DNA of 62,893 nucleotides, counting the filler, from Choristocarpus tenellus KU-1152 (taxonomy: Eukaryota; Protista; Phaeophyceae): assembly GCA_964200185.2 (NCBI GenBank). It is 11 parts of 11 records of this genome, joined end to end, with 100 filler letters (N's around TTAATTAATTAA, not from the genome) between each part and the next. Parts side by side here need not be neighbours in the genome. Positions count along the whole stretch, not along the records: positions 12,008 to 20,847 come from CAXNAD020004270.1; 10 more parts are not named here. One strand, written 5' to 3'. The notes under the pieces were generated by a model. It was not told the DNA's origin and did not search any database. It was given only the letters and a program-made list of their open reading frames with translations. Shown one piece after another: positions 13,267 through 16,200 of the stretch. The position numbers were made by a program, and so were the translations under genes. Numbering within the stretch: the stretch's first letter is position 1; every line of letters starts with the position of its first letter.

Positions 13267-16200
13267 TTAGAACTTGACATCCCCTTCCTTGTTGGCCTTC
13301 TCGTAGAAGGCAATTGATGCCTTGCGATTGGCACGCCTCTCCTTGATGATCTTGGCACGGTTGGCCTTCTGGGTAGCCTAGAGTAAAACAGCAGCACATA
13401 AAAAATGTATTCAAGGGACACAGAGGGGAGAGGGTACTCCTTTAAGTACACACAGTAAGAAATCTTTGACCAACATAGACTATGTATTAACACCTCTGTC
13501 AAGCATCAGGCCAAGCTCAAAAGGTACAAGCACGTGTCTCCATAGAGTATATCTCCATTAGTTCGAACCAAAAAACCCCAAGTAATCTAAAAGTGTGGGG
13601 TAGATCAATGGCCCACTGGTAGCACAACAACCATTCCAGGAGCAAAGTGAACCACCCAGGTCTTCAACCAAAAAGTAACCTGTCCTTCTTATTGCACCGG
13701 CATGAAACCCCCCCGACGTGGTATGTACAGGACAGGGGGGAGATTAAATGGTGCCCTATTCAAGTGTTGCATCAACACATGGGCTAATAAACAGGAAGAT
13801 CTTACATCCATTAAAAGCAAGGACACATTCCCATTGAATGGTTCACTAAATTGTTGAGCACTAATCGAGGTTTATCCTACTATCCTGAGCCAAGTCTCTG
13901 ATACTTGAAATCTCACTATAATTGACTTGAAATATTTTACTCTCCCCCATTCCCTCATCAAATCACAATTTTTCATAATTAATTCAAAATCACTCCTGTC
14001 AAAACAACACGCCACAGTAAGGGATTAAGAAGATGACCAGAGCACACAACACTAAAGTAGCACCAGAAAAAAACAAGGATAAAAGAATTAACCATACTTC
14101 AAACTTCAAGTACATGCTAAGCCCAGCAAGCACAAACAATAACTTGACTTTAGGGATAAAACAAACTCGATCATAGAAAAATAATAACCAAACCAAGGCA
14201 TCACAACATACCCTGTGTCCTTCGACTGCCCACAGTGCAGGTTTAGCAATCGGAAAGTATACCTGGTACTCAGCCTGTGCCTTCTGTGCTGCCTCAGCGT
14301 AAGGGTTGAGCTCCAGCATAACTGCCTTGTTGGCCAGAGGGTTGACCTTCTTCGCCACCTGCCTAACCTGGGCCTCCGGCTTAGGGTCCCTTAGAACAGT
14401 CTGGATCTGTTGTAAAGATGAATCATTCAGAAGATAAATTTTAAAGGCCAGACAACCAGCAATTGGTGGGATAAGTAAGGGGTGTGGCATTGATTCAGGC
14501 TTCATGAAAAGCACAAAAATATAGAGCATCAAGGCATTGCAAACCAATCAGAAATGATAATCTATTTCCCAGACAAATCCACAACTCTGAGAGTGACACT
14601 GATATGATAGATCAGGCAATCCATCCAATCCTACACTAAACTACCACGTCACACTTAAAATCAGTGTTGTCAAAACAACCTGAAAAACAATAAAAGCCTC
14701 AACCACCTTCAGTAATCCTAGGGTCAGGATCAAGGTAGATGAAATCCTTACTGACTGCACAAGACGTAGTTCATGAGGTGTTGGTATTTGAATCAAAGAT
14801 TCCCACCTCGTCTGAGTTGATGATACGAGAAAGATCAGCATTAGTCATCTGGTGGCGAGGGAGCTGGAAGCCCTTCTTGACGGCTGACTTCTCCGTGTAT
14901 GTGCCATAGATCGAATCCAACTTATCAAAGGCTGCCTGAAGGTGACAATAACAATAGAAGTATAAAAACCAGATAAGCCAGATGAGGTTAACTTGAGTGT
15001 TTCTAAGTCAATGCTATTTACACAACATACAGCACACAACAAAAAGCTTGCACCTGATAGTTTGATGCATGGATGACAAAGGGAGACACAGAATCTACCT
15101 CTAGATCATATATCTAGCAATAGTTAGGTTTCTACAGCCCGGCTTCCAACTAAAAGCAATTCTCCGCAGACCAAAACTATCAAGGTATACTGAAAGACCA
15201 TTATTTGAGCACTTGAGATAATTCTTGATTGGTGAAAATTTTAAACGCAAAATTTAATCCCAGTGAGGAACAATATCCTCGACTCCTTCAAGAACACTGG
15301 TCACCCCACTCCACAACTTTCATGTAACCTACCTGAGTCCACACAACGAAACGTCCCATGTGTCCACCAGGGGCCAGTGTGAGAAGGTTTAGCCTGTCCA
15401 CACAGGCAGTCTCCACACCAGGAATGTTCCTGACAGCCCGCTCAATGCCCTACAAATTGTATTTCATAAAATAAAACAAGAATAAAATGCCAACACTCCA
15501 AAATACCAGGAGACTGGAGCAAGTGAAAACAAATGTCTACATATGTTATGAAAAGCAAAAGTAAGCCTATCCAAAAGTGTGGGGTAGATCAATGGCCCAC
15601 CAGAGGTATAAAAAACATTCCAGGGGCAAAGTGAACCACCCAGGCCTTCAACCAAAAAGTAACCTATCCTTCTTATTGCACCGGCATGAAACCCCCCCGA
15701 CGTGGGGCAAACAGGACAGGGGGGAGATTAAATGGTGCCGCATATAAGTGTTGTAAGATTATCCATCACAACATTTGTTCACATGATAGACAATGTGTGA
15801 AGTACAGTAAAATTAAACATCTAACAATTGTTTATAAAAATAATTTCAGGGAAAAGTTCACCATCATCACACATCTGACACTCATCCCAAAATAGAATCT
15901 TTGTGGCAGCAGTTGATAGATATCTTTCTAAACAGTAGCAGTGACAATCCAGGACCTCATGCCAAAACACCCACTTGACAAGGGTATGATTGTTTGCACA
16001 AGTTATCACCAACACCTATCAATATCCCGCGAGCAAACTCAAAACTAATTTTAGACAATGGATAAATTCTCCACACATACGTTTGTTCACCCCCCCTTCA
16101 CCCCTATACCTTACCCTATGAGAACATAATCATGTTCCATACTGGTGCAATATCTATTCACTACACTCCTGATTCCCTTCAACTACTGTCAGTTCCAAAT

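Follow-up and report, generated by a model that had tools for sequence, protein, structure and literature searches.

The window analysed here is a stretch of 62,893 nucleotides from the brown alga Choristocarpus tenellus KU-1152 (GCA_964200185.2; 11 parts of 11 records, joined with filler). All the features described below lie in the piece at positions 12008-20847, which comes from record CAXNAD020004270.1 and carries on its minus strand the gene for the ribosomal protein uL4 (RPL4), interrupted by eight introns:

13267..18585, minus strand: host gene uL4/RPL4, 9 coding exons, 379 codons (spliced RNA contigs, GT..AG ends, open frame, Pfam, matches to brown-alga exons)
18055-18408, minus strand: RPL4 intron 1 (this and all the following introns from spliced RNA contigs, GT..AG)
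17309-17905, minus strand: RPL4 intron 2
16817-17211, minus strand: RPL4 intron 3
16476-16699, minus strand: RPL4 intron 4
15450-16376, minus strand: RPL4 intron 5, 927 nt, holding copy B of the block described below
14936-15332, minus strand: RPL4 intron 6
14407-14806, minus strand: RPL4 intron 7
13378-14262, minus strand: RPL4 intron 8, 885 nt, holding copy A

Contigs of the RNA sequencing run X2 omit eight segments with GT..AG ends, and splicing is correct around introns 5 and 8. In this run the depth was ca. 25,000 over the RPL4 exons vs. 14-150 over the introns, so X2 behaves as RNA, and the host gene is very highly expressed. Pfam found Ribos_L4_asso_C above the cut-off on exon 7 and Ribosomal_L4 on exon 1, and the nearest matches of the exon-1 peptide belonged to Laminaria digitata (88%) and Hapterophycus canaliculatus. 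The junction of exons 8 and 7 (14405/14807) also occurs shifted by one base and with an extra G, in a rare RNA contig of depth 11 (main form 25,000) that reflects either minor alternative splicing or a fault of assembly. Within exon 7 there is also an Rfam match to MIR7991 (14771-14811, minus strand) that is sub-threshold (22 bits vs. a gathering score of 58) and is taken as chance. On the plus strand, 20200-20847 is open for 216 aa or more and continues past the edge of the piece; Pfam gave no match to this frame, which probably belongs to a neighbouring gene lying where the GC content is higher.

A repeat search of the piece 12008-20847 returned one single family of long direct repeats, a block of 185 nt found at 13585-13769 and again at 15569-15753 with 89% identity. 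Copy A sits in intron 8 and copy B in intron 5, the two introns to which an earlier note, made from the sequence, had assigned them. In the minus-strand alignment the copies are alike from ca. 14 nt 5' of the first stem to 5-9 nt past the ACA triplet; outside the block the flanks of both copies show no similarity and introns 5 and 8 are unalignable elsewhere, so that the description of a block common to two otherwise unrelated introns was accurate. On the minus strand the duplicated unit opens with CAACACUU (13760-13767; 15744-15751) and closes with CCACACUUUU (13591-13597; 15575-15581), and ACACUU forms a short direct repeat that flanks the RNA on either side in both copies. This bracketing repeat could be chance, a trace of the copying of the unit or a processing signal. 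The block and the elements recognised within it are the following:

13585..13769, no strand assigned: duplicated block, copy A, comprising the putative snoRNA with ca. 14 nt upstream and ca. 6 nt downstream (repeat search, alignment)
15569..15753, no strand assigned: duplicated block, copy B, 89% identity to copy A (repeat search)
13591..13755, minus strand: putative H/ACA snoRNA copy A, ca. 165 nt, placed in RPL4 intron 8 and followed by the 3' splice site after 213 nt (covariance model R1, 221 bits)
15575..15739, minus strand: putative H/ACA snoRNA copy B, placed in RPL4 intron 5 and followed by the 3' splice site after 125 nt (model R1, 219 bits)
13699..13749 (copy B 15683-15733), minus strand: pocket 1, predicted target LSU U2314 in yeast numbering
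13741-13749 and 13699-13707, minus strand: 5' strand AUUUAAUCU and 3' strand UUUCAUGCC of pocket 1 in copy A, with the upper stem and loop between them
13687..13692 (copy B 15671-15676), minus strand: H box AUAAGA, one nt past the 5' hairpin, identical in both copies and fitting ANANNA
13657..13682 (copy B 15641-15666), minus strand: optional 9-bp hairpin in the hinge, forming in isolation in both copies
13604..13651 (copy B 15588-15635), minus strand: pocket 2, predicted target LSU U2211 in yeast numbering
13644-13651 and 13604-13610, minus strand: 5' strand UUCACUUU and 3' strand CAUUGAU of pocket 2 in copy A, with the upper stem and loop between them
13594..13596 (copy B 15578-15580), minus strand: ACA box, directly past the 3' hairpin, identical in both copies

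On the sense strand of the gene, hairpin, hinge, hairpin and tail appear in both copies as the unconstrained minimum-energy fold. From 5' to 3' these are a hairpin whose internal loop measures 9+9 nt, AUAAGA, a second hairpin, likewise with an internal loop, and ACA; the modelled base pairs are standard in both copies (27 out of 27). The 3' strand of the pocket starts 15 nt before the H box in pocket 1 and 14 nt before ACA in pocket 2, and the distance from the target-adjacent guide base to the box is 14 nt in both (U52 to the H box in the case of pocket 1). Fold and spacing are those proposed in the earlier note, which had seen hairpin, H box AUAAGA, hairpin and ACA with the pockets 14-15 nt from their boxes. 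The antisense (plus) strand folds more poorly and has neither H nor ACA boxes. From the H box to the 3' hairpin the hinge measures 29 nt, which is unusually long for an H/ACA RNA, and no CAB box (UGAG) was found in the apical loops of either hairpin in either copy. By fold energy neither copy outdoes shuffled sequence (z = -0.5 to -0.7), a score that carries little weight for or against a snoRNA. Taken at the level of sequence, the evidence supports the presence, in both copies, of every trait by which a double-guide box H/ACA snoRNA would be recognised.

The targets were predicted by scanning one yeast-like 18S-5.8S-25S unit (a contaminant contig), that is, the rRNA of a lineage other than the alga itself. 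Pocket 1 found there a sole site with at least 8 pairs, 25S-U2314, with 7+6 Watson-Crick pairs (LSU GCAUGAA-UG-GAUUAA in the predicted duplex), and pocket 2 equally a sole site with at least 8 pairs, 25S-U2211, with 4+8 (AAUG-UC-AAAGUGAA). Both sites fall within what we take to be the conserved domain IV of the large-subunit rRNA. Counting Watson-Crick pairs only, shuffled guides equalled pocket 1 in 2 out of 3000 trials and pocket 2 in 8 out of 3000; with G-U pairs allowed, shuffles reached the pair counts in ca. 10% (pocket 1) and ca. 26% (pocket 2), so it is the perfection of the duplexes that matters to the target argument. The weaker prediction would be pocket 2, whose 3' side contributes just 4 bp.

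The two LSU target motifs are GCAUGAAUGGAUUAA and AAUGUCAAAGUGAA, expected 103 nt apart. Searching a collection of bacterial and archaeal genomes with both motifs pulled out at least 69 contaminant eukaryotic rDNA contigs; among the matches listed the motifs were 103 nt apart in 66 of the 69 LSU contigs, with a distance of 104 nt in the remaining 3, and where the 25S begins as in yeast the target uridines were at exactly 2211 and 2314. The motifs given in the earlier note are correct. As the contigs were chosen by the motifs, their agreement is no proof of conservation in this alga. A scan of viral contigs found none of the rRNA motifs. Such eukaryotic LSU rDNA contigs, several with a yeast-type 25S, occur in dozens of assemblies registered as bacterial or metagenome-assembled genomes and look like contamination of public assemblies; some of them could derive from human DNA.

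Both uridines have a record elsewhere. Yeast Psi2314 is guided by snR86, and among the table entries shown no pseudouridine is listed at yeast 2211 (PMC5699541). In human 28S rRNA, Psi(m)3797 and Psi3694 are 103 nt apart and each is ca. 100% modified (PMC6182160), the former being guided by SNORA48 and the latter by SNORA27 (PMC6466398). The offset between human and yeast numbering is 1483 for both sites (3797/2314; 3694/2211). The two assignments first made from the sequence, pocket 1 to the known pseudouridine at yeast U2314 (human 3797) and pocket 2 to yeast-numbered U2211 (human 3694), therefore hold up as predictions, the first with its 7+6 bp at the snR86 site (PMC5699541) and the second with its 4+8 bp at a sole site and the common offset.

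Copies A and B differ at 19 of 170 aligned nt, three of these in the flanks. Within the RNA the differences are far from evenly placed, with 11 in the 33 apical-loop nt vs. 5 in the remaining 132 (Fisher p = 9e-6), and zero in the H box, the ACA, the four guide strands and the lower stems. Each of the five changes outside the loops keeps its pairing: in the 3' upper stem U-G became C-G, and CCAG became CUGG, each pairing opposite CUGG; in the hinge hairpin C-G became U-G and U-A became U-G, both pair-keeping. What the earlier note had read from the copies is borne out in every part, namely differences in apical loops or preserving pairs, CUGG paired to CCAG (copy A) or to CUGG (copy B), and invariant boxes and guides. 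Such a pattern argues for selection on RNA structure, which would have acted in both copies.

The block was found in three sequencing runs of one study, with depths taken from contigs. In the DNA run X1, the 39-nt exact core common to the copies had a depth of 14.3 vs. ca. 17 for the flanks, from which it follows that the block is not a high-copy dispersed repeat; such a repeat is among the outcomes that the earlier note had named as refuting its proposal. In the RNA run X2 no snoRNA enrichment was seen, the depth of 44-150 over the block being that of an ordinary intron, vs. ca. 25,000 for the exons; since this run is represented by contigs only and its library type is unrecorded, it is weak evidence either way on a stable ca. 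165-nt RNA. A search of the other RPL4 introns gave no C/D-like box pairs, and 11-mers antisense to rRNA at chance level only.

We looked for the block in related algae with the covariance model R1, built from the two copies and run on RPL4-bearing contigs. Ten such contigs were gathered by the exon-1 peptide search, which led to Laminaria digitata, Hapterophycus canaliculatus and further Logan/ENA contigs; the last three of the ten stop short of introns 5/8 and were left out of the scan. With default filters R1 found the two copies of the window only and none in eight related-alga RPL4 contigs, and with filters off no copy in seven related-alga RPL4 loci. A guide-motif scan of the related-alga contigs gave nothing convincing, Rfam gave no family on their RPL4 loci, and no intronic block is conserved between the RPL4 of the window and that of the relatives. 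As there is no homologue in these loci, there is no covariation across species either. The comparison of RPL4 introns among relatives suggested in the earlier note yielded no further copy; between the two paralogues, 5/5 stem changes keep their pairing. The note's idea of a family amplified by intron-to-intron duplication stands as regards the duplication, but 'amplified' says too much for just two copies. A scan of metagenomes with an exact 21-mer had no match; a looser pattern (guide, H box, guide) had 76, none of them with the other half of either pocket, and the sampled ones looked unrelated in sequence. Two protein database searches, one with a spurious frame that crosses the snoRNA and one with the frame of exon 7, gave no candidates.

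The introns themselves vary among the relatives. Intron 3 is absent from all those covering its position (n=5 compared), intron 8 is absent from the three out of three that reach exon 9, and intron 5 is present in two of five, there without a snoRNA copy. Both snoRNA copies occupy lineage-variable introns (5 and 8). One could imagine that the snoRNA unit has been mobile within the lineage and that its presence is tied to intron turnover, either by protecting the introns from loss or because its insertion created or extended them. We consider this unlikely; if true, it would be a clean case in which the hosting of a snoRNA is tied to introns being gained or retained in brown algae.

There are other possible explanations for the duplicated block. 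One would be that it is a neutral recent copy of a piece of intron, or a decaying snoRNA pseudocopy, looking like an H/ACA RNA by chance and with at most one copy functional. The existence of just two copies with 89% identity, their absence from the RPL4 of relatives and the lack of RNA enrichment would all suit such an origin. However, a neutral copy should show an even spread of changes, yet the guides, boxes and lower stems have been spared and the stem pairs all kept, which goes against it, and chance fails to account for two pockets at known pseudouridine sites with 12-13 Watson-Crick pairs and a 14-nt spacing. We regard this explanation as quite improbable. Less probable again, in our judgement, is that the block is mobile, either a small retroposon derived from a snoRNA or a small unit resembling introners, that its H/ACA look is carried along or ancestral, and that it has many more copies in the genome. 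It is true that the duplicated unit ends almost exactly at the bounds of the RNA, that ACACUU is repeated upstream and inside the ACA tail, and that the host introns are among the three (3, 5 and 8) missing in some or all relatives. Nevertheless, the 39-mer common to the copies has a DNA depth near that of a single to double copy, there is no poly(A) tail, terminal inverted repeat or clear target-site duplication, the blocks lie in the middle of otherwise unrelated introns (885 and 927 nt) and not at their ends, and intron 5 occurs without the block in two relatives.

The last alternative accepts an RNA of the H/ACA class that acts elsewhere, on snRNA (a scaRNA), on another RNA, or as an orphan. 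The target scan covered a yeast-like rDNA and not the alga's own rRNA or snRNAs, which leaves room for this idea; against it, neither apical loop has a CAB box (UGAG), and for each pocket the match to a universally conserved LSU motif is perfect, unique and placed on a known pseudouridine site. Of the alternatives considered it seems to us the most remote. We conclude that each block very likely represents a box H/ACA snoRNA of ca. 165 nt, a guide for rRNA that was duplicated within RPL4; what the analysis demonstrates is the repeat with its fold, boxes, distances, complementarity and placing of substitutions, and what we infer is expression, processing, protein binding and the pseudouridines.

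According to this reading, an RNA of ca. 165 nt would be transcribed within the RPL4 pre-mRNA. If it follows the known pathway of intronic H/ACA snoRNAs, exonucleolytic trimming of the spliced and debranched intron would set it free, with Cbf5/dyskerin, Nop10, Nhp2 and Gar1 presumably bound to the RNA and shielding it during the trimming. The pocket of the 5' hairpin would then pair with the LSU rRNA and present the uridine equivalent to yeast 25S-2314 and human 28S-3797, and that of the 3' hairpin the uridine at yeast-numbered 2211 (human 3694). A single alga RNA might in this way cover the tasks divided in human between SNORA48 and SNORA27. Duplication within the host gene would have produced the two copies, both probably kept under selection for structure and guides.

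The prediction is that the alga has two pseudouridines in domain IV of its LSU rRNA. The 2314 site is modified in yeast as well as in human, and the 2211 site is modified in human and unlisted for yeast among the table entries shown (PMC5699541). If confirmed, both sites would be used far beyond animals and fungi, and guide pockets would have been recombined differently between lineages, because one alga RNA is predicted to do the work of SNORA48 and SNORA27. The two copies also provide a covariance-model seed for annotating the family in brown-alga genomes.

Rfam gave no snoRNA family on the whole piece at E <=1, and only sub-threshold noise on a 201-nt stretch with copy A at E <=10; the families of SNORA48, snR86 and SNORA27 were without a match in both searches. 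The best of the sub-threshold hits, SNORA54 (RF00430), was rejected as a family for this RNA: 15 bits vs. a gathering score of 60 (E = 0.87), with the 5' hairpin only in the alignment and the 3' hairpin unaligned. SNORA54 guides human 28S-Psi3801, 4 nt downstream of the pocket 1 target, and pairs with an overlapping stretch of rRNA, so the resemblance comes from a shared target region and not from membership. It is very probable that the alga RNA represents a new H/ACA snoRNA family, outside all Rfam families by sequence, and the earlier note's description of an unannotated family agrees with this. To our knowledge, there are almost no curated snoRNAs from brown algae or other stramenopiles. 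The literature search found no work on stramenopile H/ACA snoRNAs and none that puts snR86 and SNORA48 together, and the snoRNAs of Ectocarpus come from bulk prediction only, with ACAseeker and CDseeker (PMC4513859).

The closest known systems are the guides of the same two uridines. One hairpin of the alga RNA is predicted to play the part of snR86/SNORA48 and the other that of SNORA27. Like the alga RNA, snR86 and SNORA48 are box H/ACA RNAs, and they address the same uridine in GCAUGAA-U-GGAUUAA as pocket 1 (PMC5699541, PMC6466398). SNORA48 is likewise intronic, but its human host is EIF4A1 and not RPL4, and the alga RNA would differ from both in having an additional, different functional pocket. 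SNORA27 (ACA27) guides 28S-Psi3694 and Psi4522, the first being the uridine of pocket 2 (PMC6466398, PMC6182160). It is intronic in a ribosomal protein gene, RPL21, like the alga RNA in RPL4, whereas its partner pocket aims at a different site than the other pocket of the alga RNA.

Ribosomal protein genes are the usual hosts of snoRNAs. Since, in addition, cis-duplication within a host gene is a described process for snoRNAs (PMC2653536), finding this RNA in RPL4 is unsurprising. The statement in the earlier note that vertebrate RPL4 hosts the C/D snoRNAs U16 and U18 is correct, and equally unsurprising (PMC2653536). In chicken RPL4, introns 1 and 3 house U16 while introns 2, 5 and 6 house U18, and the paralogous U16 and U18a/b/c of vertebrates have spread over several introns of this same host gene by cis-duplication (PMC2653536). 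The vertebrate snoRNAs, however, are box C/D methylation guides, whereas the RNA of the alga appears to be a box H/ACA pseudouridylation guide. It is the expected kind of gene in the expected kind of host.
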